Below are positions 26,061 to 56,213 of a DNA stretch of 64,000 nt, piece after piece. The stretch is from the IMG/VR virus record IMGVR_UViG_3300042545_001134, positions 246,692-310,691 of that record. One strand, written 5' to 3'. The notes under the pieces were generated by a model. The model searched no databases and was not told the origin of the DNA. It worked only from the letters and a program-made list of their open reading frames with translations. The position numbers were made by a program, and so were the translations under genes. Numbering within the stretch: position 1 is the stretch's first letter; the number at the start of each line of letters is the position of its first letter.

Positions 26061-26786
26061 ATGAAAAATTTAGAATCAATTATAAGAAAGAATCTTAAAC
26101 AGATGATTTCAGAACAACCTTCGGAAACTAACTACATGTTCTTTTCTAATTTAGAACAAATTAAAAGACAATGTGAAATGTTACTTGAGATGGACCACGC
26201 TGTTCTTGATAATATTATCATTAATGGGCACGATTGGGCTGATGACCATGTGTCTGAGGCAAAAAACAATATGGACCAAGTATTTGACTTTTTCATGAAT
26301 GAAACCAAAAAAAGTGACAATCCCGATAACCTAAATGAAGAAGAATCAATTGATGAGGGTAAAAACAAACCAACAAATTCTAAATTGTGGTCTCGTGCAA
26401 AATCTTTAGCAAAATCCAAATTTGATGTTTACCCCTCAGCATTGGCAAATGGTTGGGCGTCAAAATGGTATAAAGAACACGGTGGGGGATGGAGAAAAAA
26501 AACAAATGAAAGTATTGATGGGTCAAAAAAAAATGATGACGTGTATCACAAGACATACACATCAGCAATTAATACTGCACTCGAATATGCCGAGAAAAAA
26601 GGTTACACATATGACAAGGAAGAAGTTGCACGTGAAATTGGGATGGGTCCAAGAAAACCAAAAGATGGGGATACAAATCGTTTCACAATAAGTTTGAAAA
26701 AAGACGATAAGGAACAAAAAAAATCACTTCATATACAAGTTTATGGTATGAAAGAGACATATGAACTAAATTGTTATATTAATTAA
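26061..26786 (+). CDS. Modular putative internal head protein
   Basis: Domains separated by xxE sites (ISE, LNE, IDE, TNE); basic KPTN..LW..AK..AK.KF.VYPSA.ANGW domain. Confidence 0.6.
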   Translation: MKNLESIIRKNLKQMISEQPSETNYMFFSNLEQIKRQCEMLLEMDHAVLDNIIINGHDWADDHVSEAKNNMDQVFDFFMNETKKSDNPDNLNEEESIDEGKNKPTNSKLWSRAKSLAKSKFDVYPSALANGWASKWYKEHGGGWRKKTNESIDGSKKNDDVYHKTYTSAINTALEYAEKKGYTYDKEEVAREIGMGPRKPKDGDTNRFTISLKKDDKEQKKSLHIQVYGMKETYELNCYIN

Positions 26787-26789
26787 TTT

Positions 26790-27203
26790 ATGAATATCAT
26801 CGTATCTAAAGAAGATAAAGAGTACATCAATGAATGTCTTAAATCAGGTGAGGTTTTAAAAGAAGACCTTAGGCGTTGGTTTAAAGAAAAATGGGTTGAT
26901 GTCAGTAAAAAGGTTGATGGTAAACATCCACCATGTGGTAGAAAGGATGCCGATGGTAAATCGTATCCAAAATGTAGACCTTCAAAGAAAGTCTCAAAGG
27001 AAACCCCAAAAGTTGTATCATCTTATAGTAAAAAAGAAAAGAAATCCATGACCACACAAAAAAGACGTGCGGAAAAGGAAGACCCAAAAATTGGTAAAGG
27101 AAATAAACCTACCATGACAAGATTCGATGAGGAAATAAAAAAAAGACAACTAATCAAAATAACCGAGGAACAATTTAAAAAATTGTTTGAATCAAAAAAA
27201 TAA
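26790..27203 (+). CDS. Basic phage protein (LRRWFKEKWVDV...PCGR...YPKCRP)
   Basis: Domain common in large phages; ends in IKITEEQFKKL. Confidence 0.7.
   Translation: MNIIVSKEDKEYINECLKSGEVLKEDLRRWFKEKWVDVSKKVDGKHPPCGRKDADGKSYPKCRPSKKVSKETPKVVSSYSKKEKKSMTTQKRRAEKEDPKIGKGNKPTMTRFDEEIKKRQLIKITEEQFKKLFESKK
27138..27196 (+). repeat. 59-bp direct repeat, copy 1
   Basis: 58/59 identical to 28116-28174. Confidence 0.95.
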
Positions 27204-27228
27204 GCCCACAAACCCTAAATTTAAATTA

Positions 27229-28113
27229 ATGAAAAGGTTAATACTCACATTATCATTACTTTGTATGGGGTTCATATCAAACGCACAAACACCGGATACG
27301 TTAAAACTATCACCAAAAGAACTATTTGGGGAAAGTGGTAATTTAAATAAAGTAGGGGTATTACAATCCTACGTGAATTTCTCAAAAGACGTTCTTTCAA
27401 CATCAAATCTTTCAATTGGTGTAATTGGTAAACAAATATCTACCACCTTAAATTTAGGATATAGTAGGACATCTAATAATAATAAATGGGGTCACTCATT
27501 CGCATCATCAATAAATCCTATTTGGAAATATTATGGTGTGGGTTACGGTCTTAGTAGAAATGTAGAAAAAAGAACCACCACATTACAGACATTCTTTTCA
27601 ACGGATTTTGATTTTCAAAACGATATCACACTATCATTTATAGATGTGATTAGAACTAAAAAATATGGAACCTTCGGTTACAGTTTAGTTGTATCTAAAA
27701 CCTTTTGGGGTGGTTATCAAGGTCAATGGCAAGGTGAATATATTGTTGATTCAAACGGTAATTGGTTGTCTAATGTATACCCACAAATGTCTCCATCTAA
27801 TGAAATGAATTATAGAGGAATGGTGATGTATACGTATACGTACAAAACAAAGATTGTTAACATATCTCCTCAGTTATTCTTTATGGGTGACATATATAAA
27901 ACATTCCAAGACGATTCTTTAAACATATCATATCTAAATAAATTTAATTTAGACTTGTATTATGGGACATCTATGGATTGGAAAATAACTAAAAGGTATG
28001 TATTAAATACTAATTTCAGATATAACACAACTTGGGATAAATTAAGTGAATCAGTCGGGTATAAAAAGAGTAATCCTTTTGTATTTATGATAGGAACAAA
28101 CTTTCAATTTTAA
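27229..28113 (+). CDS. Outer-membrane beta-barrel-like protein with signal peptide
   Basis: Signal MKRLILTLSLLCMGFISNA/Q; alternating aromatic strands; C-terminal ...GTNFQF BAM-type signal. Confidence 0.7.
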   Translation: MKRLILTLSLLCMGFISNAQTPDTLKLSPKELFGESGNLNKVGVLQSYVNFSKDVLSTSNLSIGVIGKQISTTLNLGYSRTSNNNKWGHSFASSINPIWKYYGVGYGLSRNVEKRTTTLQTFFSTDFDFQNDITLSFIDVIRTKKYGTFGYSLVVSKTFWGGYQGQWQGEYIVDSNGNWLSNVYPQMSPSNEMNYRGMVMYTYTYKTKIVNISPQLFFMGDIYKTFQDDSLNISYLNKFNLDLYYGTSMDWKITKRYVLNTNFRYNTTWDKLSESVGYKKSNPFVFMIGTNFQF

Positions 28114-28517
28114 TGAAAAAAAGACAAGTAATCAAAATAACCGAGGAACAATTTAAAAAATTGTTTGAATCAAACGAAAATGTACACGTATTAAGTTACG
28201 ATGATGAATTTGGTTCAGTGGAAAATACCTCATTTGAGGCATATGGTTTATTAAACGAGGCCGAATACCAAGGACGTAAGGTACAACTTGGTAAGATTAT
28301 GCAAGGTGACATTAAGAAATTTAAAGTTTACGTTAAGAATGACAAAGGAAAAGTCGTAAAGGTAAACTTTGGTTTTGGTGGTAAATCCGCAAAGGGTAAG
28401 AGAATGGTTATTAAAAAGAATAATCCCGCAAGAAGAAAATCATTTAGAGCGAGGCACCATTGTGAGAATCCGGGTCCACGTTGGAAACCAAGATATTGGG
28501 CCTGTAAAACTTGGTAA
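28113..28517 (+). CDS. Basic phage protein (AEYQGRKV...RRKSFRARHHC...RYWACKTW)
   Basis: Domain common in large phages, after an LNE site. Confidence 0.7.
   Translation: MKKRQVIKITEEQFKKLFESNENVHVLSYDDEFGSVENTSFEAYGLLNEAEYQGRKVQLGKIMQGDIKKFKVYVKNDKGKVVKVNFGFGGKSAKGKRMVIKKNNPARRKSFRARHHCENPGPRWKPRYWACKTW
28116..28174 (+). repeat. 59-bp direct repeat, copy 2
   Basis: 58/59 identical to 27138-27196. Confidence 0.95.
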
Positions 28518-28522
28518 TTAAT

Positions 28523-28950: not shown

Positions 28951-29391
28951 TTAATAAAACATTACCTGTACACCACACTCATTAAGTAATTGAATACTTT
29001 TAAGTTGGGATTCCTCCCACTTTTCTTTATTCTTAGTTGTACATGTTCTTTTACACCATATAACTTTAATTCCCGAATTTACAATCCCTCTGGAACAATC
29101 CATACAAGGAACTCCCGATGTTAAGTAAATCTTGGAGTTTTTTAATGCCGTTCCGACACGTGCAGCGTTATAGATTGCGTTACGTTCAGCATGTTCGAAC
29201 CAGAAGTACTTTTCAGGTCTTTCCTGACGTTCTTGTTTAGAATCATCCATTCCCCTCGGAAATGAATTATAACCCGTAGAAAGTACCTCATTATCCTCCC
29301 CAACGATAACTGCACCTATCTGTGTAGATTCATCTTTTGATTTTAATTTTACTTGTTCGGCAATGTTCAGGAAATACTCGGTCCAATTCAT
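28951..29391 (-). CDS. dCMP deaminase
   Basis: SKD.STQIGAVIV, TGYN, HAERNAI, PCMDC. Confidence 0.95.
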   Translation of the reverse strand: MNWTEYFLNIAEQVKLKSKDESTQIGAVIVGEDNEVLSTGYNSFPRGMDDSKQERQERPEKYFWFEHAERNAIYNAARVGTALKNSKIYLTSGVPCMDCSRGIVNSGIKVIWCKRTCTTKNKEKWEESQLKSIQLLNECGVQVMFY

Positions 29392-29808: not shown

Positions 29809-31539
29809 TTATCTTAATGTGTCAAGACTGAATGTAGCCAATCCATGTACGTCAATTAAGCCATAGTAACGGTTATTAACCATTTTCTTAGCGTATCTTG
29901 TCATAATACCCTTAATTGGGGTAAAGTTGAACGGGTTATACATTGTAGGAGTCAATTGTAAAGGAACGTAAGGTGCGTAAATGTAACCTGCGTCTAACAA
30001 TGATTTTCCTTTGTGACCGATGATTACTTTACCTGCTGGTAAGTAAGGGTCACGGTAAACTTGGTAACGACCAGCTAATGAACCGATTTTCTCGATACCC
30101 ATGTTGTAAGTGTCAGCCTCTGGACCAGCACTTGATACGTGGAAATATTCTAAGTCATCGAATACTGCTGATACTTCAGAAGAAACAACAACCCAGTTAG
30201 CTCCACCACGAAGAGTTGTCTTGTGGATTTGAGCAGAGATTTGGTTGATTTTGGTAACCAAAGTTTGGTTCCAATCTTTCTGAGTGTAACCCATGAAAGG
30301 AGTGTTACCGGTTGCTCCGTATTTCCATTCGTTATAGTCCCACTTAGTTCTCCAAGCGGCACCTTTACGGATGTCACGTAAAATTTCACGGTCAATTTCT
30401 GCCGCAACTTGCTCAGACAATAAAGCTGTTAATTCAGCCTCAGCGTCGATGTTGTGGAATGCAGAAACGTCTTGTGCTAATTCTGGAGACCAGCTAGCTC
30501 TTAGTTTTCTTTCAGTTACAGAAACTGTTACTGACTCAAGGTCGAAAGAAACCTCACCGATTTCTTCTTCGAATTCAAGAGAAGCATAAGTGTTGTAAGA
30601 AACAACTAAGTTAGCAAGTGCTAAGTCGTTAGAACTAAAGTCAGATGCAGAGAAACCATTTGTTGTACTGTAAGATTCGAAATCTACATTTAAGTAAATT
30701 TTACCTTCTTCGTCACAAATGTCATTGTATTTAGCAACACCACTACCTGATTTTTGTCCGTACTCAACGATACCTTTACCATATTTCTGAGTTACAACGT
30801 TAAAGTTTTTAACACCGTTTTGTGCTGTTGTGTTACCAGTAACTGTGATTGCTAATGAAGCTAAAAATTCTTCAGTGTCCATAATGTTACCATTAGCACC
30901 TACCATTTTACCTTCACCTGCTGTAGTGAAACCACTAAGAACAACGATTGCACTTGATACTGAATCTCCACTCAAAGCGGCTGTACTTTCAGATGCAGCA
31001 CCATTACTGAATGTTACGAATGCGAAAGGTGCTGCTGCGATTGCAGTAACTGCTCCTTTAGAATAATCGAACAAACCTGAAGTTGCTGTGTCATCTTCTT
31101 CGTAGAAACGGTCGTACAAGTTAGTACCTGTGTAACCTGAAGTTGGGTTAGTTTGAGACGAAGGGAAACCATAAGGTTGGTTATGGTAACCACCTGAAGT
31201 TCTTTCCTGAATTTTAGGGATAAAGAAGAACAATTTACCAATAGGTAAGTTCATTGCTTGTACCGAAACGATGTCGTTTGCTAATAATTTAGAGAATACA
31301 CGACGGATAATTGGGAAAACTACAGTCTCGAAAGAACCACTAGCATCAGAAACTGCTGCTTCGTTGATTAAGTAAGACGCTTGGTTTTCATACAATTGCG
31401 CGATGTTATCTTTTTTATGGCCTTCAAGGCCTTCTAGGAAACCTAAGTCATCCCATTTTTTGATGGTATCTTCTTTGATAACTCTAAGGTGTTTTAACCC
31501 GATGTTACCTACCATACCTGATTCTAATAATGCTCCCAT
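29809..31539 (-). CDS. gp23: Major capsid protein, T4 gp23-like
   Basis: IVSVQAM, RKLRASWSPELAQD, AEAELTALLSEQVAAEIDREI, YAPYVPL, GIMTRYA. Confidence 0.97.
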   Translation of the reverse strand: MGALLESGMVGNIGLKHLRVIKEDTIKKWDDLGFLEGLEGHKKDNIAQLYENQASYLINEAAVSDASGSFETVVFPIIRRVFSKLLANDIVSVQAMNLPIGKLFFFIPKIQERTSGGYHNQPYGFPSSQTNPTSGYTGTNLYDRFYEEDDTATSGLFDYSKGAVTAIAAAPFAFVTFSNGAASESTAALSGDSVSSAIVVLSGFTTAGEGKMVGANGNIMDTEEFLASLAITVTGNTTAQNGVKNFNVVTQKYGKGIVEYGQKSGSGVAKYNDICDEEGKIYLNVDFESYSTTNGFSASDFSSNDLALANLVVSYNTYASLEFEEEIGEVSFDLESVTVSVTERKLRASWSPELAQDVSAFHNIDAEAELTALLSEQVAAEIDREILRDIRKGAAWRTKWDYNEWKYGATGNTPFMGYTQKDWNQTLVTKINQISAQIHKTTLRGGANWVVVSSEVSAVFDDLEYFHVSSAGPEADTYNMGIEKIGSLAGRYQVYRDPYLPAGKVIIGHKGKSLLDAGYIYAPYVPLQLTPTMYNPFNFTPIKGIMTRYAKKMVNNRYYGLIDVHGLATFSLDTLR

Positions 31540-31572
31540 TTTAGTATTTTTTTTGGTTTTTTATTTTTATGT

Positions 31573-32840: not shown

Positions 32841-33524
32841 TTATTTAGATAAAAAACTATCCAACTTATTCATTAGATTTATCATTTTGTTAGACTGTTC
32901 AGGTCTTTCTTGGGTTGATTCCTGATATTGTTCTCTCTCACTTGGGTCCTTAAATACATAGGCACCGGGGGTAGATGGAGATGATACTAAATCGTAACAT
33001 ACGAGTTCAAAGTCCTCTTGTACTATATTCTGACCTCTAACATTCTTTAAGGAACCGACACCTCTTGATGATATACCCAACGTTGCCCCGTTCATAAGTA
33101 ACATTGCGGCTTGGTCACCCTTAGTACTAACGATACCCATCTTCTTCCAACCTGGTGAAGTGAATAGTTTAATTTTACCCATTAGGATTTTACCATCCCA
33201 CCAAGTTTCAAGGATTGAATGGGAAACCCTATCTAAATCGATAAGTGATGATGATGGGTGATTTAACTCATTTAGAGCACCACCTTTTTTAATAAGGGTT
33301 TGATATTTCTCGTTTTCTCTCTTTAATAATACTTCAGGGTAGATTCTACCGTTCTTATTTGGAGTATCATATTTTTGTAAAACAGCATACAAAATAATAT
33401 CCTGAGAGAAGTCTGTATCTTTCATCTCGGATATTATTTTTTTATTGTCTTGGGGAGAAACGTGACCGGCGTCGTATTCTATTAATATACCTCTTCCGAT
33501 TTCATTGGGTCCGAGTATTTTCAT
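32841..33524 (-). CDS. gp21: Prohead core protease, T4 gp21-like
   Basis: NKNGRIYP, ELNHP, VSH, LGISSRGVGS, DLVSSPSTPGA. Confidence 0.95.
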   Translation of the reverse strand: MKILGPNEIGRGILIEYDAGHVSPQDNKKIISEMKDTDFSQDIILYAVLQKYDTPNKNGRIYPEVLLKRENEKYQTLIKKGGALNELNHPSSSLIDLDRVSHSILETWWDGKILMGKIKLFTSPGWKKMGIVSTKGDQAAMLLMNGATLGISSRGVGSLKNVRGQNIVQEDFELVCYDLVSSPSTPGAYVFKDPSEREQYQESTQERPEQSNKMINLMNKLDSFLSK

Positions 33525-35003: not shown

Positions 35004-36815
35004 TTATTGTTCGTTTAGTATATCTTTTAATTTATTTTCTATTTCATAAATATTCTGTTGTGCCCTATTCATATCGAATAAATCGGTAAACTCTTCGCTC
35101 TCACCCAACATTCCTAATATTTTACGTTTTTTTGATGATTCCGCTAACGGTTCGGCTCCACCCGATGGAGGTGCCTCCGCCGCTGGCGCTCCACCACCCA
35201 TATCCATTCCACCTGGTTCTCCACCACCTTCCGGTGCATCACCACCCTGTTCTCTTTCTTCCTCAGGAACACCGTACTTAGTATCTACTTCATCAAATAC
35301 ACCTGAACGTTTAATAACATTCTGAGTGTTTGTTAATTCAAATCCCATTGCTCTTTCAAGACGTTGTTGTTGTAAATCAAGTATAACCTCACTATCACTC
35401 ATACCAAGAATATTTTTCTTAGCCCATGTGTGGGATACTGGTAATATACCAACTTGTGATGTGTCAGACGTTGCATCTTTATATAGAACAATTTTTTCTT
35501 TCCACTGCTCAATACGTAATAAGTCTGATTGTGCTGAAGGGTTAGTTAATGATAATGTGAAATTATCCAACTCATCCTCCAATCCAAGAAGATACAAATG
35601 CATAAGTGCAATTTTGTTTAATTCTTGAATCATAGACTTTTGAATTCTATTGATGGTTCTAGCGAAACGGATATCCATTAACGCTAAAGTTTTACCGTCA
35701 CCAACCACCTCTTCAAAACCTAAGAATGCCTTAGGTATACGAAGTGCCGCCAACATTTTCTTTTGGATGTATTCAATATCCGCAATCTCACCTAAGTTTT
35801 GTGCTCCCGGTAGAGTTTCAATTGGATTAGTTTGTGCCGCATCACGTACAGGAATGAAATAATCTTGGTCAACAGCCATTTGGTTATATCTCATATCCAC
35901 TTGACCATTTCTACTGTCAACTATTTGGTCCCTTTTAAATTTGTTCGCCACACGTTGCACATACGCCTCGATATCTTTATCATCCATGTTACCAACGAAT
36001 ACTTTGAATACACGTCTTTCGGGTGCTCTTGTTGTTCTATAAATTAACATCGCATCTTCGGCAAGAAGTAATTGTTTCCAAATTCTTCTAATCTTATCCA
36101 ACATTGATGTACCATATGGTAACTTTCTATCGTCACCCAGTAATCTAAAGTGGGCAATTTCCCATGCTTGGAATTCTAAATCTTTATTTTTCCATTGGAA
36201 CCTTAATTCTCTCGATGGCATCTTAGAATCATTTTGGTTAGGTGCTTTAGTTGAGCCACCCTCCATTCTTTCAATCTCAATATTCGGTAATTGTTGACAA
36301 CCAACAATACCTTTTTCGGGGTCAATTTTTAAATAAACAAAATCATCACCGTACTTACACACACCACGAGCCCACATTTGTAGGTTAGTGTTCAAATCTA
36401 AACGATTAATGAATAAGTCCTCAAGTATGGTTTTAATTCTTGAAGATTCTGAAAATATAGTAAGAATTTCACCTTTTTCTGATAATGTAGTAGATTCTTC
36501 TGCATAGATGTCTAATGCCGCCGAAATCTCAGGAGTAAACTCCATTGATTCATAATCATAATACGCCGACATTCTATTTGGTTCATAATAAACCGATTGG
36601 TTATATAATGATTGTTCAAGTTTTGTCCACTTGTCAGCAACGTATTGACTCTGTTGAGCCTGTAACATCGCCTTTTCGTATTCTTCCCTACTATTGGTTT
36701 TTAGTATTTCTTCTCTCGAGAAATTAAATGACGGTGAATCCTCGGGTTTTACTTGTCCCGGGAAACCAAACATCTTGGTTAACCTCTGAAATACAGTTAT
36801 GTTATTATCTGCCAT
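35004..36815 (-). CDS. gp20: Portal protein, T4 gp20-like
   Basis: PEISAALDIYAEE, EDAMLIYR..RAPERRVF.V.VGN, DYFIPVR, IETLPGAQNLGEIADIEY. Confidence 0.96.
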   Translation of the reverse strand: MADNNITVFQRLTKMFGFPGQVKPEDSPSFNFSREEILKTNSREEYEKAMLQAQQSQYVADKWTKLEQSLYNQSVYYEPNRMSAYYDYESMEFTPEISAALDIYAEESTTLSEKGEILTIFSESSRIKTILEDLFINRLDLNTNLQMWARGVCKYGDDFVYLKIDPEKGIVGCQQLPNIEIERMEGGSTKAPNQNDSKMPSRELRFQWKNKDLEFQAWEIAHFRLLGDDRKLPYGTSMLDKIRRIWKQLLLAEDAMLIYRTTRAPERRVFKVFVGNMDDKDIEAYVQRVANKFKRDQIVDSRNGQVDMRYNQMAVDQDYFIPVRDAAQTNPIETLPGAQNLGEIADIEYIQKKMLAALRIPKAFLGFEEVVGDGKTLALMDIRFARTINRIQKSMIQELNKIALMHLYLLGLEDELDNFTLSLTNPSAQSDLLRIEQWKEKIVLYKDATSDTSQVGILPVSHTWAKKNILGMSDSEVILDLQQQRLERAMGFELTNTQNVIKRSGVFDEVDTKYGVPEEEREQGGDAPEGGGEPGGMDMGGGAPAAEAPPSGGAEPLAESSKKRKILGMLGESEEFTDLFDMNRAQQNIYEIENKLKDILNEQ

Positions 36816-36872: not shown

Positions 36873-38642
36873 TTACCTCTTTTTGGAAAATAACCACGAA
36901 TATTCTTTATAGTGGTCCTTAGTCGCATTACCGTGTATCTGTTGAACCACATTAGCGTCCGTACCCATTGAACCTATTTGGTCAAATGCGGTACCATATG
37001 AATAAAACGATTTGTTCGGTTCGTAGGTTCTTTCAGTTACCGTCCACGACTCCAACATTGCCTTATTTGCGTTCTCGTTTTTTTCTAATTGACTAAAACA
37101 CATATCGGCCGCGTAAAGTGCCATCGACATACTCATAATTGCATCATCATGATGTCCTTTCATGTGGTCAGGTCTACCGTTGATATAAACAAATGTGTTT
37201 AATTCATTTACTAATCTACTTGACCTAACTTGGAATCCTTTTCTTAATTGTTCTTCAAATGCGGCAACAATCTGAGTTCTTTTATTGTTAAAATTTAATC
37301 CGGGGATTTTTTCCATCGCCTTCGAATTATATTCCCAAATATTCTTTGTATTAACACCATCAATATACAGGTTCCTATAATTCATCTCCTGTAATTTTCT
37401 GGATGTTGCCACACCCATACCACCGGTGATATCAATTACAATAAACGCCTCATATAAAATTCCCCATTTATATGCAACTGACGCTAAATCGTCGGGTGGA
37501 ATCTTACCTATATATTCCGCAACTTGTTCCCTCTCATCAAAGTCAATTATATTAATAGATGAGAAGTCTTCACTGTCCCCTCTACTCACATCGACACCCA
37601 TAATGTATTTATGTCCTTGTACCGGTTCTTTCCATTGCCAAAAGGTACCTTGCATGTACTTTTCTTTTGGTGTGCGTAACATGTTCTTAGTTATATTATC
37701 TTGAATATCACCCGGAATAACACCATCACCCGAACCCAAGAAGTCACACTCTAACTCTTGCGCAATCTTACGTCTATCATATTTGAACTTTTTTGACATT
37801 GATTCAAACCATGAAGAAAACGGTTTATATCCCAATTCTTCAAGTTCGGCATACTTTTCTATGTCAAAGTCATATATTATCACTTCAGTATCGTCATATT
37901 GTTCTCTATTCAACATGTAATGACATATATCCTGACATTTAACCCAACGTAAGTCCTTTGTGTAACGAGGGTCTTTAAACCACCTTAAATCGGTTATATG
38001 GAAGTCATTGATACCTCTCATCGCTTGGTCATAAACACCATAGTAAATTGGGTCATATCCATTCGGAGTAGAAACAAGAATAATCTTACCACCTGTAGAT
38101 AGGGATGCCATAGATGCCGCCCAAAAATCTTCACCGGCTTCGATATATGCCGCCTCGTCAAATACAAGGATTGTTGGGGTATAACCACGTAACGCATCCG
38201 CAGATGTCGCAACCGCCTTAACCTCACACCCGTTGTTTAACCTAAATCTACTTTCTGAATTTTTATCGGGTGAAAACCCAACATTCAACCAATCTGGCCA
38301 TTGGTCTAAGAAATGACGAACCTTATTGGCCATTTCCACCGCGGTATCCTTTTTGTTGGCAATTAATAATACCCTTTCAGGGTTTTCTGGTTTTGCCAAT
38401 TGTAGTCTTCTGGAAATCCATGCGGCAGTTACTGTGGTAACACCGGCCTGTCTATATTTCCTCGTAATATTTTCGTTGTATACTTCGTAATCCTTGATTA
38501 ACTGAACTTGGTCAGGGAATAACTCTAAAGGAACATATTTCTTTTGCGTATTGTCATATGTCGTTAAGTATGTTTTTAACGCATATGGAGCATCCTTCAT
38601 TATACGAGCATACTCTTTTAATTGTTCTATCTTATTACTCAT
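36873..38642 (-). CDS. gp17: Terminase large subunit, T4 gp17-like
   Basis: KYRQAGVTT, LVFDEAAYI, STPNG, QELECDF, GVDVSRG..EDFS, HDDAIM. Confidence 0.96.
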   Translation of the reverse strand: MSNKIEQLKEYARIMKDAPYALKTYLTTYDNTQKKYVPLELFPDQVQLIKDYEVYNENITRKYRQAGVTTVTAAWISRRLQLAKPENPERVLLIANKKDTAVEMANKVRHFLDQWPDWLNVGFSPDKNSESRFRLNNGCEVKAVATSADALRGYTPTILVFDEAAYIEAGEDFWAASMASLSTGGKIILVSTPNGYDPIYYGVYDQAMRGINDFHITDLRWFKDPRYTKDLRWVKCQDICHYMLNREQYDDTEVIIYDFDIEKYAELEELGYKPFSSWFESMSKKFKYDRRKIAQELECDFLGSGDGVIPGDIQDNITKNMLRTPKEKYMQGTFWQWKEPVQGHKYIMGVDVSRGDSEDFSSINIIDFDEREQVAEYIGKIPPDDLASVAYKWGILYEAFIVIDITGGMGVATSRKLQEMNYRNLYIDGVNTKNIWEYNSKAMEKIPGLNFNNKRTQIVAAFEEQLRKGFQVRSSRLVNELNTFVYINGRPDHMKGHHDDAIMSMSMALYAADMCFSQLEKNENANKAMLESWTVTERTYEPNKSFYSYGTAFDQIGSMGTDANVVQQIHGNATKDHYKEYSWLFSKKR

Positions 38643-47826: not shown

Positions 47827-48156
47827 ATGGATACAAATACTAACTCAATTGCGACCAAAAAATTATTAATAAAAGGAAAGTATGAAGGTTTTAAAGACTT
47901 TTATGATGTTAACAAAATTGTTATTTACAAAAACATTTTAAAACTTTTTACCAACTTCAAAAAACAAGATAAAGACCAATTAGTTCTTATCATTTCGGCA
48001 AAGATTAGTAATTTAGATTGGGAAACCGAATTGAAATTTCAAAGAAAAGAGTCCATCGTTTTAGTTCGTGATATCATGCCGTACTTCGAGCAAATCGAAG
48101 ACTATGAAACATGTGGTCAAATCTGTGACCTATACAAAAAAATACAATCAGTTTGA
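47827..48156 (+). CDS. Hypothetical protein
   Basis: 109 aa; C-terminal EQIEDYETC is UVR-like. Confidence 0.65.
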   Translation: MDTNTNSIATKKLLIKGKYEGFKDFYDVNKIVIYKNILKLFTNFKKQDKDQLVLIISAKISNLDWETELKFQRKESIVLVRDIMPYFEQIEDYETCGQICDLYKKIQSV

Positions 48157-50439
48157 TGAGTGAGATAAGTTTGAATCACCTTTAACAATATACTTTATGT
48201 TAAGGGTGACAGAACTTGTCACAAAATTTATAGTAAAACTCGTAACGGGTGTTACTGTTTTATAATTTGATGGAGTTATCGAATTAAAATCTGACGCAGT
48301 ATACCACCACACTTTATCAAACGTAATCATACCTGTAAGATTTGCACCAAGTAAGTACGCATCAGGTATGGTAACAACACCGTCATCATTAATGTCACCA
48401 GCCCTCATTTTAGGTCCACTGTTCAAATGTATTCCTGAAAGTGTATTGTTGGGTGTATTTTCATTTTGAGACTCGTTAAACACCAAATCAAAGTCTGATG
48501 AAGTTAGTGTTGGCGTAAATGAAGGTACAACTTTGAAAGTTGCATTATGTTTTGTTGGATTCAATGTATATGTTCCGTTTGTTGCGACCGTTACGGTTTG
48601 TAATAATGTGTCCGTAGTACCCACAACCAAATATAATTTAACCTGCGGTCTTGTGGATAGTCCAGATGGAATTGTAATTGTACCACTAATTGTTTCAGTT
48701 ATAATTGAAACCGTACCATTACTACTATATGCAAATCCACAAGTACCACTTTGTAATTGTGCTCTAAATAATGTTTTGGTTGTAATGTTTGTATAACTAT
48801 TACTTGCAGTTGTGTTTGTTATGTCTGTCCAGTTGACACCGTCATTAGTAGACTTCTGCCATTTAACAATAGTTCCAGTATAACTACTTAATGTCAATGT
48901 ACCTGAGTTTGTTGTACTCGTGTGAGTTGCTGATGACACACCACCACCAACAGGGGGTGTTCCCGATGTTACGCTGATAGTTTTAGCACCTGATAATACC
49001 GCACTACCACAACTCGGTGTTTGGACTTCAACACGATAATAATATGTACCAGCGGAACTTATGGTTTCTGTTAAACTTGTTGTTGTGTTAGAGATATTAG
49101 TCCAATTCACGTTGTCCGTTGAGCGTTGCCATTTATTTACATTACCCTGTTGACCTGATAATGTTAATTCAACTTGACCACCGGCACATATAGAATTATT
49201 TGCCGCGAATACCGACCCCGATTTAGTTGGTTTTACGGTAACATAGACACTTGAGGTTGCCAATCCCGAACAACTAACAGGACTTGATGAATTCACAATT
49301 GCTCGGTAATATGTTGTCTTCGTTAAATTGGTTACCGTTATACTTGTTGATGTACTTGTGATAGTTGTTCCTGCAGTAAAAAAGTTATCGAAAGATGATT
49401 CCCATCTAACAACACTACCCGATAAATTATTTAATGTTAATGTCGTACTATTACTTCCTGAACATACGTTAACATCACCACCACTTATGTAACCACTTGA
49501 AGAGTTACTGACCTCAATATTTCTTGTTAATATAGTTGTACTCGTTGTTATATCACCCGGCATGTCACCATACTCACAAATATAACCCGGTAGAGTACTA
49601 TTTGCTAAGTCATTCCATTGACCACTATTTGATGAATAGAATTGTCCAAACGCTTCCGAGGTACCATTTGGTTCTCCACCCGCCCATTTATGATACATAC
49701 CCGATACTAAGGTTGTACTTGGGGTATTTCCATTTGAAAAGTTTTGACCTTTTTCAGGACCTGTAACCCAGTGCCACTTTCCTTCTGATGCGGATTGACT
49801 CGCATAAACAGTTGAACCCTTTGCAGTGTTGATATAGTTGTAATCATCCGATGCACCAAACCAAGCATCGTTTGCCATTAATTTCCAAATAAAGTTATTT
49901 TCCGCCTCGGATAAAACTGTTGCCAAATAACCAACCCTTCCGAAGTATGATTTATTACTTGCGTTTGTATATGAATTAGTCCAACTTGTATTACCCGACA
50001 CATATTCATAAAAGTGTTCGGTTAATGGATTATAAAAAACAGTACCTGCAACGAAAGTCACTCTTCTTTGAAGTGCGTAACATGTGGAGGTGGTTGATTT
50101 AAATTCAACACCCCTTAATACTGATTCCCAATTTGTTGCAGTTGTTGAACCACTAAAAATTAAAACACCCGTTGTGGTATTAAATGATGAAGAAACTCCC
50201 GATGGAAGTGTTGCCGTTGACCTTAATTGGTCACCACTCGTATATGTTTGAGATATTTGAACTCTAAAACCTGTAATCGTTCCATTTGCGGTTAAAGTTA
50301 GATTTGGGTCAACTTTAGTCCACGTATTATATGTCGATGAAAGAGCACTCGTACTTGATGTTCCAAGACTAACAGATGTTGCCTGTGAAAAACCTAAGAC
50401 TGGTAACAATAAAAATAATATGTATAGTAGTTTTCTCAT
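48148..50439 (-). CDS. Secreted C-type lectin, Ig-like repeats and C-terminal dockerin-like domain
   Basis: Signal peptide; GYLATV.S.AEN, WFGASD, EGKWHW, W..GEPN, WNDL, YICEY; three G..V.WQ.S repeats; AGDINDDGVVTIPDAYLL. Confidence 0.85.
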   Translation of the reverse strand: MRKLLYILFLLLPVLGFSQATSVSLGTSSTSALSSTYNTWTKVDPNLTLTANGTITGFRVQISQTYTSGDQLRSTATLPSGVSSSFNTTTGVLIFSGSTTATNWESVLRGVEFKSTTSTCYALQRRVTFVAGTVFYNPLTEHFYEYVSGNTSWTNSYTNASNKSYFGRVGYLATVLSEAENNFIWKLMANDAWFGASDDYNYINTAKGSTVYASQSASEGKWHWVTGPEKGQNFSNGNTPSTTLVSGMYHKWAGGEPNGTSEAFGQFYSSNSGQWNDLANSTLPGYICEYGDMPGDITTSTTILTRNIEVSNSSSGYISGGDVNVCSGSNSTTLTLNNLSGSVVRWESSFDNFFTAGTTITSTSTSITVTNLTKTTYYRAIVNSSSPVSCSGLATSSVYVTVKPTKSGSVFAANNSICAGGQVELTLSGQQGNVNKWQRSTDNVNWTNISNTTTSLTETISSAGTYYYRVEVQTPSCGSAVLSGAKTISVTSGTPPVGGGVSSATHTSTTNSGTLTLSSYTGTIVKWQKSTNDGVNWTDITNTTASNSYTNITTKTLFRAQLQSGTCGFAYSSNGTVSIITETISGTITIPSGLSTRPQVKLYLVVGTTDTLLQTVTVATNGTYTLNPTKHNATFKVVPSFTPTLTSSDFDLVFNESQNENTPNNTLSGIHLNSGPKMRAGDINDDGVVTIPDAYLLGANLTGMITFDKVWWYTASDFNSITPSNYKTVTPVTSFTINFVTSSVTLNIKYIVKGDSNLSHSSN

Positions 50440-52067
50440 AGATTAACCTTACTACCTATTAAGAAGAAAGATAAAATAGGAATTTCGGGGTTCGAACTTA
50501 TATTCGCCTTATAATTCATGTTTATTTTAAATCTTTTTGAGATTTGATAATCAAATCCACTACCCAAGAATCCACTAAAAAATCTATCGGTTATTGTTAC
50601 TTGTTCTTTTGTTGAGTAAACCAACGGTGTTGACATTACATATAATTCGGGTGACACCATTAATTTTTTACCGACCTTAAACGGTCTGGTGTAAAACGCA
50701 GTTACAGATGGTGAATAATAACCACTCTTATCTTCTGAAATGATTGATACCGCACCACTTACGTTAAAACCCGTAACACCCCATTTACCTGCGTTTAAAA
50801 TACCACTATATCCTAAGAAACCAAGTATATTTCCATAGGTGTATACACCAGTTAGACTAGCGTTATGTATGTACTTTATTGTGTTCTTTTTATTGTAATG
50901 TAACTTAGTATATTTTGTCGATATCGCAAATTGATTAAGATTTGCCCAAATCATAGCGGTCGCCCCGAAACTCGATAAACCTGTCATTGATGACCTGTTT
51001 GCACTCAAGTTAAGAATTGGAGTAAATGTTTTATTTAAATTTTGTGCGGTTGTTAAATCAGAAGAAACAATCAATGGATTTGAACTACCTGATTTACCAC
51101 CACCTGATTTACCACCACCTGATTTACCACCACCCGATTTACCACCACCTGAACTACCACCACCACTACCATTATCGTTGTGAGCGTCATTATTCATTGT
51201 TGTGGTTGCCCCAACCTCTTCATTACTTTGACTGTTTGAATTGTTACCCGACCCCGTTCCACCACCTGTTGTACTTCCGCCTGTGGTTCCACCCGAACTA
51301 CCCGTAGAACTACCATTACCACCGGTTCCACTTCCACCTGTTGTACTACCGCCAGTTGTTCCTGAACCACCCGTTCCACTTCCTCCTGTTGTACTACCGC
51401 CAGTTGTTCCTGAACCACCTACAGGTGGCTGAGACGAGCCACTTCCCCCTTGAGGTGGGTTACTTGAACCTGTGCTGTTTCCTCCCTGTGTTCCAGTTGA
51501 ACCTCCCTGAGAAGAATTAGTTCCTCCAGTCGACCCAGTAGTTCCTCCTGAACCTTGGGATTGACCTCCATTCTCGCCTCCCTGAGAAGACGAACCACTT
51601 CCGTTATTGTTATTACCTGACCCATTTGAATTTCCATTAGATTGTTTATTCCCATCTTTTTTATTATTCCCACCGGCATTAAGATTACCCCCACTCGATG
51701 ATGATTGAGCGGATGACATAATACTACCAACAACCGATTGTACGGTACTACTAATAATTTGGGATGTGATTTGATTTTGTGTTACTTGACCTTGTTGTTG
51801 TGAACATGGGTTTGTTTGACGATACTCGGAGTATGTTTGATTAACCCAACTTGAGAATACTCCACTGGCAACATCCGCAGCGGTAAAGTATTGACTTTTA
51901 TTTAAAAAAAATATTGTAGTACCACCTTGTAATGGTACGGTAAAAAGAGTTACTTCTTTTGTACATGGGTCGATAAATGTTTGCACCGACACCTGAGCCT
52001 TTATATTCTGACTAAACAGAACAAAAAAACTTATAAAAAATAATGTCTTTATTGTTTTCCAATACAT
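50436..52067 (-). CDS. Secreted protein with long Gly/Ser/Thr linker and C-terminal beta-barrel-like region
   Basis: Signal peptide, ~200 aa G/S/T/N low complexity including GGGKS x3-4, then alternating strands ending GSKVNL. Confidence 0.7.
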   Translation of the reverse strand: MYWKTIKTLFFISFFVLFSQNIKAQVSVQTFIDPCTKEVTLFTVPLQGGTTIFFLNKSQYFTAADVASGVFSSWVNQTYSEYRQTNPCSQQQGQVTQNQITSQIISSTVQSVVGSIMSSAQSSSSGGNLNAGGNNKKDGNKQSNGNSNGSGNNNNGSGSSSQGGENGGQSQGSGGTTGSTGGTNSSQGGSTGTQGGNSTGSSNPPQGGSGSSQPPVGGSGTTGGSTTGGSGTGGSGTTGGSTTGGSGTGGNGSSTGSSGGTTGGSTTGGGTGSGNNSNSQSNEEVGATTTMNNDAHNDNGSGGGSSGGGKSGGGKSGGGKSGGGKSGSSNPLIVSSDLTTAQNLNKTFTPILNLSANRSSMTGLSSFGATAMIWANLNQFAISTKYTKLHYNKKNTIKYIHNASLTGVYTYGNILGFLGYSGILNAGKWGVTGFNVSGAVSIISEDKSGYYSPSVTAFYTRPFKVGKKLMVSPELYVMSTPLVYSTKEQVTITDRFFSGFLGSGFDYQISKRFKINMNYKANISSNPEIPILSFFLIGSKVNL

Positions 52068-52080
52068 AATAATAAATACT

Positions 52081-52104
52081 AAAAAGGGGGTTATTAACCC
52101 CCCA
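52081..52104 (-). terminator. Putative intrinsic terminator
   Basis: GGGGGTT-AAT-AACCCCC plus U tract on the minus strand. Confidence 0.55.
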
Positions 52105-52135
52105 AATTTTTAATTATCAATAATAAAAAATAACA

Positions 52136-52903
52136 TTAATTAGGAAAAACACCCTTCTTAATCATCCTAAGTAGGATTCTACTACATGCGATGTCCAATG
52201 ATTTTTTTGTTGCGATTCCAATTGTTGATTGGTTGAATTTTACTTCACTTAGATTATCATCGTTTAATAAACTTAATTCTCTTACCGTCGTCGCCTCACC
52301 CAAACCACTAGCACCAATAATGGCACCCGTTTCTGCGTCTGTGAATCGAACTTGCATACCAATACGAGTTGTTACAGTATTTTTAACTCCATTTGCCATG
52401 TTTACTGTTTCATCTTCACTAACAGAATAATCATATAGTTCAATTGTAACAAAGTAATGTGCCAAACGTATTTTACCTCTACCGTTTAAAGTATCTTGGG
52501 AAATACCCGCTTGAGATGCTTGGAATTGTTTTACCATTCTATTCTTAATCTCTGTTTTATCCTCAGTGAAAATAAAACGATTAAGATTCTCAAGATATTC
52601 AAGTGTCATATTCGCAACACCCAAACCAACTTTCTTTTCCTTTAGTTCAGGGTATAGTTCATATACCTCATCACTAATACCGATTTTTAATATCTGTATT
52701 GGAATTTGAGGTCCCTCATAATCCATTAAAGAATCGATATTAACACTGGTTTCAAAAGATGCCTTATATTGTTCTGTTTGTGTTTTACCGATAGTTTGTG
52801 CGGTTGCCTTATTGGCAAACGCAAACATTAAAAGAAACCATAAGATAACAACCATGATTGGCATCAAATATTGTTTTACTTTATCGTTATTTAATAGTTT
52901 CAT
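52136..52903 (-). CDS. CsgG/HfaB-family-like protein
   Basis: GLGVANM..E.L...NRF...E......., A.YFV...L.DY, IGMQVRFTDAETGAII. Confidence 0.65.
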   Translation of the reverse strand: MKLLNNDKVKQYLMPIMVVILWFLLMFAFANKATAQTIGKTQTEQYKASFETSVNIDSLMDYEGPQIPIQILKIGISDEVYELYPELKEKKVGLGVANMTLEYLENLNRFIFTEDKTEIKNRMVKQFQASQAGISQDTLNGRGKIRLAHYFVTIELYDYSVSEDETVNMANGVKNTVTTRIGMQVRFTDAETGAIIGASGLGEATTVRELSLLNDDNLSEVKFNQSTIGIATKKSLDIACSRILLRMIKKGVFPN

Positions 52904-52904
52904 A

Positions 52905-53459
52905 TTATAAACTGCCTTCTTCTTTTATTTTTCCGCACTTTAAACATTCTTCTTCACCATCTCCGTCAGCATCACCCCAAACGTGTTCACACTGTCTGTG
53001 GTCAAAATACTCATCGATGATTCCGTCGTTGTCAAAGTCTAATCCGTCCATAACACCATCTCCATCTTCATCGATTTCAACACCTTTTTTGGCAACTTGG
53101 ACAGGTTGTTCAAGTTCCTCGATTATGGGTGACGATGTTGGTCCACTTGGTATATCAGACGTGTTTGATATCGAAATACCGTCCTCCTCATCCATTTTCT
53201 GAACTAACATTTTATCCTTATCGGTATCACTAAACCAATAGTCAATGATTTTCCCGTAAGAACCAATAAATGCACCTAATAAAAGGAGTAAAAGTTCTTT
53301 CCACTCTCCTTCAATTGGTGATTTGGAGAATATCGCAAAAAACATTCCGCCAACGATGAACATGAACCCACCTAATACTAAAGCGGTAATGTACCATCTT
53401 CTACGCATCATTGCATATAATAATTGCTTAAATCCGTCTGGTTGTTGTGTATTTGACAT
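52905..53459 (-). CDS. Two-TM membrane protein with Ca-binding DxDxDG loops
   Basis: Two hydrophobic helices; DEDGDG, DFDNDG, DADGDG; CEH...CLKC. Confidence 0.7.
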   Translation of the reverse strand: MSNTQQPDGFKQLLYAMMRRRWYITALVLGGFMFIVGGMFFAIFSKSPIEGEWKELLLLLLGAFIGSYGKIIDYWFSDTDKDKMLVQKMDEEDGISISNTSDIPSGPTSSPIIEELEQPVQVAKKGVEIDEDGDGVMDGLDFDNDGIIDEYFDHRQCEHVWGDADGDGEEECLKCGKIKEEGSL

Positions 53460-53483
53460 ATTTCTTTTTTTTACTTTAAATTA

Positions 53484-53804
53484 TTACCATTTTGGCTCTT
53501 CAGCCGCAAATTCGTCTTTTTTCTTTTCTTTAGGTTTTTCAGCTGGTGCTGATGCCGCTGGTTTTTCAACAACTCTTTCAATCACTTTGGTTGTACCACC
53601 TGATTGTTGTTGTTGGTTAGCGTTACTGTTAGTAATGTTAATAACGGGTGCTGCTTGTTGAACTGGTTGTGCTTCTTCAGCACCTCCACCTAACATTGTT
53701 GCGAACCATGTACCGGCGCCTAATACTGCTGTTGACAATACACCGATTATGGTTTTTTTAAGTCCTGTCCAAGTTCCTTCTTGTTCTTGTGTTTCTTCGC
53801 TCAT
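53484..53804 (-). CDS. Single-TM hypothetical protein
   Basis: 106 aa ORF in operon. Confidence 0.7.
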   Translation of the reverse strand: MSEETQEQEGTWTGLKKTIIGVLSTAVLGAGTWFATMLGGGAEEAQPVQQAAPVINITNSNANQQQQSGGTTKVIERVVEKPAASAPAEKPKEKKKDEFAAEEPKW

Positions 53805-53808
53805 AAGT

Positions 53809-55716
53809 TTAGAGTTTTATAAATTGTTTTGTTAATTGGTTATTTTGATTGTTTAATACTAAATAGTAGTGACCCGTACTTGATGATGTCATGTCAATTT
53901 GTTTGTATCCCACTGTGGAACCTTGACCTGAAATTTCACCAATGTGTTTCACCAATCTACCTTGCATATCATAAATACTACCATTTAACTTAATATTCGG
54001 GTCGGGGAAAAGAACCTCAATCTCAAACCATCCTGTTACTGGATTTGGTCTAATAAGTGCGCTAATTTCTTTAAATTCACCGGGTAAAGTGGTTGGTGAC
54101 ATTTTATAGAAAAGTGTGGTCACTTGACTTGCTAAGTTTATTTCCAAATGGTCACCGTTATTATCAGATGCATCCATTAATTTTCTCACATAAATGTTTG
54201 TACTAACATCAACATTACCAATTGGACTAAATTTTATTTTAAATGGAGTGTGTGAACCAACCAATCCGTCTTTTTGTTGGTTGTTCATACCACCGAATCT
54301 GATGGTTCCCGCGGCCTCATCATGAGTTAAGTATTGTAACCAAGGACCACCATTAAAGTTGGAAACTATTTCATCAAATTTAACCTTTGTTTTATCGTAC
54401 TTCATCTCAAACTGTAAACCGTAGTTTTGGTCACCATTTGTGTTGATGTTAAATGGAACATACATTGGTTGTCCAAGTGATGATGTATTAGGAATTTCAA
54501 CATCTAATTTACCTTTATAAACCGCCTTAGCAACTAATACACCTGAACTGTTATAAACAGGAGATGAATAAGTTCTATCAACGTCACCTAATACAAAGTA
54601 CTTAATATCGATGTTAGTTAAGTTAGTGGTACCAATACTATCCACAACATAATTGTATGCGGTTGAGTGGTTTGTCCATTCTGTCCATTGGTTAGCGCCT
54701 AACACTAATGAATCAAATACATTTCTGTGGAATGCGTGAATCATTGTGGTTGTGTCAATCTTTTTAAGACCACTTATGTTTGCGTAAATCAAATAAGGGT
54801 CACCACCATCGATTTTACCGTTTTTGTTAACATCACCAATCAAATACGCCAAACCATGTTTCAAGTAGTTTTGTGATGGTGTTTGACTAACATCGGTAAC
54901 CGAATATTCATCATATGTTTTAACCGCATCAGATATAGTAACACCATAATCTCTAATAGTAGTCATACTATCTGCTGGGAATCTTACTGTTAATTTATAT
55001 TTTGTATTTTTATCTACGTTGTTAAGAGAGTAAAGACCTGCAGTATCCACTTGTTGTGAAGATACAAATTCACCTGTGTTAAATTTAGTACAAATGATTG
55101 TAGGTCTCATTCCAACACCTACCATAGTAGGTGGTAACCATACTTTACCACTAATAACCAAGTTACCCAAAAGTTCAAGATGCATATCCTGTACGTTCAA
55201 GGTCGCAATGTTATCACCAATTGTGGTACCATCAAATTTGAACATACGAGCCCAGTTAATTTCAAGACTATCCGCGTTGAAGTTTGATGTAACATCATTT
55301 ATGATAAATTTGTTATGTATTAAGAAAGTATCCGCAGTAATCTGAGAACCACTTGATAATACTAAGTAATTTCTGGCAACAGTGTAGTTAGTATCGGTTG
55401 CATATGTGTACGAACTTGTACTTGAGTTGTAACCCGAATACTTGTAGTCATTAAAGAACTTAATAGACAACGAAGGGGTCATACTACTAACGGTAGCGTC
55501 AACAGTTGTTGATACGTGAGTAAAAAGTTGTTTTCTATATTGAAAATCAACTTGGAAGGTTCTTATGTCCACAGATGACGATGCGTCATATTTGAACACC
55601 ACATCTAATGTGTCTCCTCTTTTAATGGTTTTATAGGCAACTGGGTTACCTATACCTTGTGCAAATGCCGACGATGATGTAATTAATACAACAAGGGCTA
55701 AAATTAGTTTTTTCAT
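53809..55716 (-). CDS. T9SS-tagged scaffold protein: cohesin-like, Ig-like, dockerin-like, cohesin-like, T9SS type A CTD
   Basis: Signal peptide; GDTLDV...FQVDFQY; GDVNKNGKIDGGD; VPF.I.....YGLQFEMKYD..KVKF; IRPNP...IYDMQGRLV...GHYYLVL...TKQFIKL. Confidence 0.8.
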   Translation of the reverse strand: MKKLILALVVLITSSSAFAQGIGNPVAYKTIKRGDTLDVVFKYDASSSVDIRTFQVDFQYRKQLFTHVSTTVDATVSSMTPSLSIKFFNDYKYSGYNSSTSSYTYATDTNYTVARNYLVLSSGSQITADTFLIHNKFIINDVTSNFNADSLEINWARMFKFDGTTIGDNIATLNVQDMHLELLGNLVISGKVWLPPTMVGVGMRPTIICTKFNTGEFVSSQQVDTAGLYSLNNVDKNTKYKLTVRFPADSMTTIRDYGVTISDAVKTYDEYSVTDVSQTPSQNYLKHGLAYLIGDVNKNGKIDGGDPYLIYANISGLKKIDTTTMIHAFHRNVFDSLVLGANQWTEWTNHSTAYNYVVDSIGTTNLTNIDIKYFVLGDVDRTYSSPVYNSSGVLVAKAVYKGKLDVEIPNTSSLGQPMYVPFNINTNGDQNYGLQFEMKYDKTKVKFDEIVSNFNGGPWLQYLTHDEAAGTIRFGGMNNQQKDGLVGSHTPFKIKFSPIGNVDVSTNIYVRKLMDASDNNGDHLEINLASQVTTLFYKMSPTTLPGEFKEISALIRPNPVTGWFEIEVLFPDPNIKLNGSIYDMQGRLVKHIGEISGQGSTVGYKQIDMTSSSTGHYYLVLNNQNNQLTKQFIKL

Positions 55717-56213
55717 AGTAGTTTATCGAGTAAGTTTATTGTTGTTTTCTTTATTGCAGAACTTGCGGATTCTTGATTGAATTTACCTCCCTCATCAATA
55801 ATGATTGTTGAAGTTGATATTTCAGTCGATTTACCTTCCGCAAATTCAGTTTTAATTTTTTTATCTCCTTTATAGAGAACACCCTTCATTCTAATGACGG
55901 TGGTACTTTTATCTTGGTGAAATACAGCAATTCCTGATTTAGTATTGACGATATCAAAGAATATTAATTCAACCTGTATTGAGTATTCGGCCTTTTCTTT
56001 TACCCCAATCAAGACCAAACTATCTTGTTCATTTATTATTTCTTGAACAATGTTTTTTACTCCAAACGCCAAATTTTTGTTACCAACAAGAGTACCAACA
56101 CGGATGTTGTTAATCACGGGTTCAACAAAAATAGTCGGTCCTGTCTGAGCAGTTACGCTCAAAAAGGGACATAGGAATAGCACAGAAAAAATTATACTTT
56201 TGATAAGTCTCAT
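55713..56213 (-). CDS. Secreted protein (possible CsgG/TolB-N-like alpha-beta fold)
   Basis: Signal peptide; GVKNIVQE and FNQES.S.AIKK echo the 255-aa CsgG-like protein. Confidence 0.55.
   Translation of the reverse strand: MRLIKSIIFSVLFLCPFLSVTAQTGPTIFVEPVINNIRVGTLVGNKNLAFGVKNIVQEIINEQDSLVLIGVKEKAEYSIQVELIFFDIVNTKSGIAVFHQDKSTTVIRMKGVLYKGDKKIKTEFAEGKSTEISTSTIIIDEGGKFNQESASSAIKKTTINLLDKLL

Follow-up and report, generated by a model that had tools for sequence, protein, structure and literature searches.

Among phage morons there are genes that encode outer-membrane proteins, lambda Lom and Bor being examples. In the T4-like Aeromonas phage Aeh1 the nrdA gene is split by mobE, and the tails created by the insertion matter for assembly (PMC3045599). 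PeSL cassettes are flanked by repeats that excise mini-circles, less than 50 bp of homology being sufficient (PMC2839356). The internal proteins of T-even phages have only an N-terminal capsid-targeting leader in common (PMC3012670, PMC12373910), and gp21-type proteases cleave after Glu (PMC5694885). Here we analyze a locus of a 310-kb lake-water phage in which a gene for a predicted outer-membrane-type beta-barrel protein lies between two direct repeats that belong to the two halves of a split gene. The locus is part of a 64,000-nucleotide stretch, hereafter the window, which comprises bases 246692-310691 (the last 64 kb) of the 310,691-bp IMG/VR virus record IMGVR_UViG_3300042545_001134 (estimated completeness 93%, genome G+C content 34.7%). 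In our reading, to which we assign a probability of about 0.75, the barrel gene, coding for 294 amino acids (aa), cut a fused gene in two and duplicated 59–63 bp of the target in doing so, and its product is exported.

The repeats are 59 nucleotides (nt) long and identical at 58 positions, the single C/G mismatch giving L in one copy and V in the other. They stretch to 63 nt (27134-27196 and 28112-28174) when two mismatches are allowed. A 39-nt core of the repeat is present in exactly two copies in the window, where none is expected (100 dinucleotide shuffles), and these are its only copies in the whole 310,691-bp genome. The two repeats are spaced by 978 nt, or 326 codons, and are in the same reading frame. 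The first copy forms the C-terminus of open reading frame (ORF) A (..KKRQLIKITEEQFKKLFESKK*) and the second the N-terminus of ORF C (MKKRQVIKITEEQFKKLFES..). A sequence-only reading of this DNA had described precisely such a pair, 59 bp with one mismatch, at the end of one ORF and the start of the next and flanking a gene similar to those of outer-membrane proteins (OMPs); positions, mismatch and frame all agreed with our analysis. Both halves of the split gene keep a 20-residue leader encoded by the duplicated segment. The upstream half gains two Lys residues and a stop codon from the left end of the insert. Translation of the downstream half begins at a Met codon located within the duplicated segment, and a TAATG overlap of stop and start codons couples this half to the barrel gene, in the same way as the barrel gene is coupled to its neighbor at its usual locus (see below).

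Relatives were found by searching IMG/VR with gene A and gene C, which yielded hundreds of them (loci are designated below by L and a number). In most relatives the two-module gene, composed of a DUF5872 module, the 20-residue leader helix and a phrog_7595 module, is a single ORF of ~250 aa. Of 65 distinct viral loci in which both parts are present, 58 have A and C as one ORF; among such loci from Joint Genome Institute (JGI) metagenomes, 45 of 61 are fused. In the closest kin the fused ORF is 249-255 aa long and has one copy of the leader motif near residue 121-127; gene A of the window aligns with residues 1-134 of the single-ORF homologues. The alignment of fused homologues contains two strongly conserved modules and, between them, a variable linker that includes the motif helix. 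In silico deletion between the repeats produced an open 249-aa frame that is collinear with and 86% identical to the fused homologues L084, L085 and L103. Both expectations of the sequence-only reading, that recombination between the repeats would fuse the ORFs in frame and that a fused allele devoid of the OMP gene would be found in relatives, were thereby borne out. The fused alleles belong to related species: the nearest kin are 87-92% identical in gene A, and no relative above 92% identity was found in a metagenome scan with this gene. The repeats could still recombine, deleting the barrel gene and restoring the in-frame fused gene.

The split gene had earlier been taken for a head-protein gene. 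This assignment found no direct support: gene A matches Pfam family DUF5872 (PF19197; 50.4 bits versus a cut-off of 27.5, residues 8-96), gene C matches phrog_7595 (E 3.8e-10), and these families, as well as phrog_23735, the only other one matched, are all of unknown function. An AlphaFold2 (AF2) model of a fused homologue built with a 27-row alignment was unusable (predicted local distance difference test, pLDDT, 43.9; predicted template modeling score, pTM, 0.22), with only a short helix over the motif discernible. In a sublineage represented by L019, L030, L156 and several metagenome loci the two parts are separate genes; the end of A, ..YEKK*, overlaps the ATGA at which C starts, and the N-terminus of C reads MK.IITESQYNKLF. 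Since A and C occur as natural separate genes, the modules can work apart and the split would be tolerated.

The same arrangement was assembled in four more IMG/VR contigs from different metagenomes (3300042363_000700, 3300044675_006684, 3300042997_001281 and 3300044547_001026), with all encoded proteins being 100% identical (tblastn). Among the viral loci compared, the insert is carried only by the genome studied here and by these identical contigs. The stretch is present in 20 lake-water or freshwater runs from 20 studies. In contigs of the four runs examined, the left junction is bridged by a contig spanning 26882-28045, a strain variant with 7 differences, and the right junction by contigs spanning 28092-28390 and 28093-28524. 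The variant strain has two synonymous changes in the repeats, at 27164 and 27170, both in the left copy only. The insertion is therefore older than the strain divergence, and the repeat copies are not being homogenized.

Comparison with Aeh1 reveals parallels. In both cases a phage gene is cut by an inserted gene into two separately translated ORFs, the sequence made by the insertion becomes a tail, at the C-terminus in one half and at the N-terminus in the other, and function is presumably retained. In contrast to mobE, the insert in the window is a barrel gene without a nuclease domain and not a homing endonuclease, and the tails are a duplicated copy of the target gene's own leader. Because the window modules exist elsewhere as natural separate genes, reassembly of the halves may not be needed, unlike in Aeh1. 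Fragmentation by a homing endonuclease was rejected as a class for this locus, there being no match to a nuclease family and the predicted fold being a membrane barrel.

The PeSL cassettes and their mini-circles (PMC2839356, PMC4122927) resemble the locus in that an accessory ORF lies between short direct repeats, where a crossover would delete the ORF as a small circle or insert it, and in that a recurrent element marks variable positions. The PeSLs themselves, however, are non-coding, consist of a promoter and a stem-loop and are present in many near-identical copies, whereas the window repeat is coding and has only two copies in the genome that are similar at the DNA level. The numbers of promoter-like and terminator-like sites were not above shuffle expectation (18 versus 16.0 and 2 versus 1.5, respectively), and none was located in the repeats on the plus strand. 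With the repeat inside coding sequence and lacking a promoter and a terminator stem-loop, its unit does not match a regulatory cassette of the PeSL type.

As with morons, an accessory gene for a host-envelope protein is found within a block of virion genes. Unlike in the morons named above, to which it has no homology, no Pfam family matches the barrel gene. It is placed within coding sequence, lacks a promoter and a terminator of its own, and comes from a conserved phage-internal cluster and not from a host. Its GC content (0.304) is similar to that of the neighboring genes and its family is confined to phages; a host-derived moron was rejected on these grounds. A transposon or insertion sequence was rejected as well: the insert has one ORF, no transposase domain and no inverted repeats at its ends, and the duplication is 59-63 bp long. 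We consider the case a variant of known phage gene shuffling that is new in its details, with the recombination-handle idea only partly supported and the capture mechanism tentative.

The 294-aa inserted protein has a signal-peptide-like N-terminus, MKRLILTLSLLCMGFISNAQ (as read from the sequence), and ends with ..GTNFQF, the last residue, F294, being nearly invariant in an alignment of 28 sequences. Its AF2 model (pLDDT 74.9, pTM 0.66) is all-beta with ~14 strands. A Foldseek search with the model returned 54 PDB chains at E <= 0.001, with E values from 2e-5 and template modeling (TM) scores of only 0.45-0.47; all chains among the matches listed are outer-membrane barrels (NanC, EspP, PcoB, FapF, BamA). 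Matches in the Atlas included an autotransporter domain (TM 0.64) and Bacteroidota DUF2490 (TM 0.55-0.58). The model and both structure searches thus agree with the OMP-like product recognized in the sequence-only reading, and the inserted protein is a predicted outer-membrane-type beta-barrel. It has no family in Pfam (E <= 0.1), PHROGs (E <= 0.01) or NCBIfam (E <= 1), and no profile match to curated OMP families, including PorP/SprF (PF11751). Exhaustive HMMER search of 1.84 billion representatives revealed only 25 clusters at 50% identity, and the nearest Atlas clusters are all viral; by these searches the barrel genes are a small phage-only family. The gene is present in a single copy in the genome. 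A comparison with the barrel region of the 543-aa protein encoded at 50436-52067, suggested earlier, identified a remote relative (tblastn E 0.046; hhalign probability 98.3%, E 2.4e-14). During infection, the barrel protein most likely reaches the outer membrane of the host by export, and an effect of the gene on the host surface is plausible.

In relatives, barrel homologues 61-75% identical to the inserted gene reside in a conserved co-oriented cluster (27 related contigs). The cluster begins with a gene for a ~760-aa signal-peptide protein that has a marginal C-type lectin match, followed by the barrel gene, genes for two small lipoproteins and a gene for a 104-aa membrane protein, and continues with homologues of the window genes at 52905, 52136 and 50436. 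The start of the barrel gene overlaps the stop of the ~760-aa gene, and its own stop overlaps the start of the first lipoprotein gene as TAATG. Even a homologue with 40% identity keeps the same neighbors. In three relatives in which a single contig holds both loci, 27-30 kb separate the usual cluster from the fused A-C gene, and the two are on opposite strands.

The window contains the syntenic cluster, seven co-oriented genes whose products mostly possess a signal peptide in the Bacteroidota style or a transmembrane segment. Missing from this cluster are the barrel gene and both lipoprotein genes, and the lipoproteins are absent from the whole genome. Surface remodeling, secretion and lysis are possibilities for the role of the cluster. 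Its 635-aa protein has a signal peptide and a type A sorting domain of the type IX secretion system (T9SS; PF18962, 32.9 bits versus 27; TIGR04183, 27.7 versus 23), which suggests that it is a phage cargo for the type IX secretion system of the host. Because of this sorting domain on a phage protein, the host is probably a member of Bacteroidota.

In a maximum-likelihood tree the window barrel forms a 100/100 clade with two homologues that are 80-82% identical to it, and this clade is nested among barrel genes resident in the cluster. Both clade partners are found in unusual contexts, one before a barrel gene similar to that at 50436 (L276) and the other between a gene for a 155-aa protein and a GGACT-family gene (L277); no direct repeats of note surround either of them. 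Homology stops at the ORF boundaries, and the sublineage of the window barrel therefore appears to move as a bare ORF. The GGACT/AIG2-like gene of the gamma-glutamyl cyclotransferase family 3' of the barrel gene (L277:1420-1869) is unusual in a phage contig. The barrel ORFs of L175, L180 and L187 start with GTG and are intact.

Table 1. Positions of the split gene, the repeats, the inserted gene and other features. Coordinates refer to the window except where noted.
Feature	Coordinates	Strand	Remarks
Gene A, 137 aa, upstream half of split gene	26790..27203	+	DUF5872 module and C-terminal leader copy; ends KK*
Direct repeat copy 1, 59 nt	27138..27196	+	Extends to 27134; encodes KKRQLIKITEEQFKKLFES
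Left junction	27197..27228	+	AAAAAATAA gives gene A two Lys codons and a stop; then 25-nt spacer before barrel gene
Inserted gene, 294 aa from ATG	27229..28113	+	Signal-peptide-like N-terminus, predicted outer-membrane beta-barrel, C-terminal ..NFQF
Direct repeat copy 2, 59 nt	28116..28174	+	Extends to 28112; encodes KKRQVIKITEEQFKKLFES
Gene C, 134 aa, downstream half of split gene	28113..28517	+	Leader and phrog_7595 module
543-aa signal-peptide protein	50436..52067	-	C-terminal ~214 residues, remote paralogue of the inserted barrel
Syntenic cluster	48148..56213	-	Signal-peptide/membrane proteins of 166, 635, 106, 184, 255, 543 and 763 aa
635-aa protein	53809..55716	-	Signal peptide, T9SS type A sorting domain
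Leader-bearing ORFs (whole-genome coordinates)	11150-11398, 20614-21000, 30859-32178, 32666-32884, 35251-36303, 66554-67183		In addition to window 28113-28517
241-aa gene upstream of gene A	26061..26786		Contains KLW..YPSA.ANGWA..GGGW module
dCMP deaminase gene	28951..29391	-	Between split gene and head genes
gp23-family capsid gene	29809..31539	-	Head module
S77 prohead protease gene	32841..33524	-	Head module
Portal gene	35004..36815	-	Head module
Large terminase gene	36873..38642	-	Head module

The sequences of both junctions were compared with those of the relatives. The barrel gene of relatives mostly ends with ..TTTCAATTTTAATGAAAAA(A/G) / TTTTAATGAAAAA[AG], where ATG is the start of the next gene. 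In the fused gene of most relatives there is a Met codon at the position where C starts (..DESMEKR..), and L085 reads ATGAAAAAAAGA. The right junction in the window reads TTTTAATGAAAAAAAGACAAG. Given the matching donor end and the target Met codon, the right join would lie within 7-11 nt shared by donor and target. The left junction, ..GAATCAAA|AAAATAAGCCCAC, is in an A-run; the first A of the junction sequence listed in Table 1 is the last base of repeat copy 1. Both junctions being in A-runs fits a microhomology event.

T4-type phages replicate by recombination-dependent replication. The event proposed here would be either a switch of template during replication or a pair of illegitimate joins in A-runs. 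Departure from the target would have taken place where the leader ends, and re-entry at ATGAAAAAAA, 59 nt upstream, with the duplication as the footprint of the event: exactly this duplication would be expected from a template switch that re-enters upstream, or from two illegitimate joins offset by 59 nt. The odds that the insertion was a single microhomology-mediated event are about even.

Several points weigh against the proposed insertion of an exported barrel. The 32 nt before the ATG of the barrel gene match no relative's flank. No close relative in the pre-insertion state was found, the nearest fused kin being only 87-92% identical in gene A, which rules out a base-by-base reconstruction of the junctions. 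In a genome as AT-rich as this one (35% GC), microhomology in A-runs is weak evidence. A homology-driven route is conceivable because relatives have leader-flanked cassettes at the same boundary. The window barrel clusters with two homologues in odd contexts and may therefore come from another phage and not from the phage's own cluster. Finally, export and membrane insertion of the barrel protein are predictions only.

The homology-driven route is connected with the leader itself. The motif M-(K/R)-K-..-(I/L/V)-(T/S)-E-x-(Q/D/E)-(L/F/Y) starts 8 of 334 ORFs, with ~0.8 expected from its overall rate; MKKIKITESQLK, MRKIIITESQLK and MAKIIKLTENDLK are examples from this genome, and one leader protein of 439 aa carries the leader twice. 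The A-type genes of relatives also begin with a leader (MKLIITERQ..), so the fused proteins look like chains of leader plus small module. In the split-gene lineage of relatives, other inserted genes occupy the same A|C boundary. The leader MNRSFSKIRHIQEANLRLEKRMLSEQV precedes unrelated bodies in L149, L232, L237 and L253, and does so twice in tandem in L235, where the two cassettes have a common ~95-nt 5' region and unrelated bodies. This second leader family, MN(R/K)SFSKIRHIQE(A/S)NLRLEKRMLSEQV, is situated between A-type and C-type genes (L149:4292-4756, L232:1991-2455, L235:3035-3976, L237:387-962, L253:297-689). A 247-aa gene in L247 has the leader MKIIITESQ as in C, with 24 identical nt.

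If leader DNA serves as portable homology, a circle or fragment with the barrel gene and one leader could have integrated by a single (Campbell-type) crossover, with the automatic result that leader copies flank the barrel gene. A crossover in the opposite direction would release a circle of 978 bp able to enter other leader-bearing genes or co-infecting relatives. We regard such capture as possible but tentative. It is favored by the recurrence of the leader at N-termini well above expectation, by tandem genes with repeated leader DNA at the A|C boundary of L247 and L235, by in-frame insertions of modules in the linker of fused kin, by the presence of T4-type head genes, and by the occurrence of the window barrel sublineage in three different contexts; T4-type recombination needs <50 bp of homology, and PeSL circles between flanking repeats are documented (PMC2839356). 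The barrel gene, however, has no leader of its own, and none stands beside it in L276, L277 or the 27 relatives. Any scenario therefore requires, at some stage, an illegitimate join at leader|AAAAATAAG. The other leaders in the genome have at most 15-26 nt of patchy DNA similarity to the repeat and are too diverged to pair with it, contigs of four runs and exact-pattern scans revealed neither different cargo nor an empty site or a fused allele in this species, and the one-sided changes of the variant strain indicate copies that are not homogenized. The sequence-only reading had the motif act as a recombination handle. Its recurrence and the presence of other cassettes at the same boundary stand; the lack of a leader on the barrel gene and the divergence of the remaining leaders speak against it.

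T4 capsid-targeting leaders end with (I/L)-x-E. The genome contains T4-type head genes, namely PF03420 Peptidase_S77 (gp21 family, 77.9 bits) and PF07068 Gp23 (247.8 bits), and genes for portal and large terminase are also present in the head module; the split gene is 1.3 kb away from the gp23-type capsid gene. By sequence, both components of the capsid-targeting pattern are present, an N-terminal leader ending with (I/L)-x-E and a gp21-family protease, and the I-T-E of the leader fits a gp21-type cleavage site after Glu, which is a lead only. By analogy, the M-K-K-x-x-I-T-E-x-Q-F/L leader might be a T4-like capsid-targeting and cleavage signal, with its DNA being the crossover point of cassettes in jumbo phages of lake Bacteroidota; we think this rather unlikely. 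An equally long shot is that the A|C boundary might represent a hypervariable array of leader-tagged proteins that are packaged and probably injected. If so, cleavage at ITE would yield identical mature products from fused and split genes, and the insertion would come at no cost. The T-even internal-protein (ip) loci (PMC3012670, PMC12373910, PMC5694885) are similar in having a short N-terminal leader (M-K-..-I/L-x-E) before unrelated small, often basic bodies, variable tandem cassettes, and a gp21-family protease together with a gp23-family capsid protein. They differ in that the leader described here has no sequence homology to the T4 leader and the inserted barrel gene is not a leader-bearing cassette. 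Were the leader to serve in packaging, this freshwater locus would correspond to the internal-protein hotspots of T-even phages, which harbor anti-defense proteins, and the foreign barrel gene inside it would be an escapee from a cluster in which the phage encodes surface and secretion proteins.

Reversible switching, whether programmed or frequent, would amount to phase variation, the population toggling between the split gene with the barrel and the fused gene; it is very improbable. At 98% identity the repeats are of sufficient length for recombination in phages, and removal of the DNA between them restores an ORF that is intact and similar to its orthologues. However, no joint skipping the 978 nt was seen in the contigs of four runs, which as contig data would miss a rare allele; an exact-pattern scan for this species' fused allele, with 57-69 nt separating an A-specific from a C-specific flank, found none in IMG/VR or JGI metagenome contigs; and the repeats gather independent changes.

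That strains were mis-joined, giving rise to the duplication or to the position of the barrel gene, or that the repeat is a product of chance, has a negligible probability and was rejected: the record is a metagenome-assembled virus and related strains share the samples (loose ends, and high depth at the conserved 3' end of the barrel gene), but the identical arrangement recurs in the four other IMG/VR contigs, Logan contigs of other runs bridge both junctions, and the repeat is expected zero times by chance. Together with the fused alleles of relatives, this recurrence in independent assemblies also removes the objection under which the sequence-only reading would have failed, namely an artefactual repeat with no fused allele anywhere.

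The insertion proposed above offers a clean natural example of one phage gene becoming two, with the 59-bp footprint recording the event. Both the state before (fused, in >100 relatives) and the state after (fixed in one lake population) are in hand. Three further aspects are little described. The first is a phage-only family of outer-membrane barrels within a conserved signal-peptide/lipoprotein cluster, together with a protein sorted by the T9SS, in jumbo phages whose hosts are probably Bacteroidota. The second is the recurrent N-terminal leader as a marker of borders between modules and of sites of insertion, and the third is the occurrence of one barrel sublineage in three different genomic contexts.

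Some fused A-C homologues contain extra in-frame modules in the linker (L016:3530-4393, L047:3401-4423, L025, L038, L115 and L134). These are either a CxxC..CxxC zinc-ribbon-like segment or a helical segment of ~50 aa, and the linker is, on this comparison, an apparent hotspot for module gain. In L055, L063 and L068 one ORF of 323-355 aa combines an A-like module, a KLW..YPSA.ANGWA..GGGW module and the C module; the middle module is found also in the 241-aa gene upstream of gene A. These three small basic modules are, as judged from such ORFs, shuffled into different fusions across phages.

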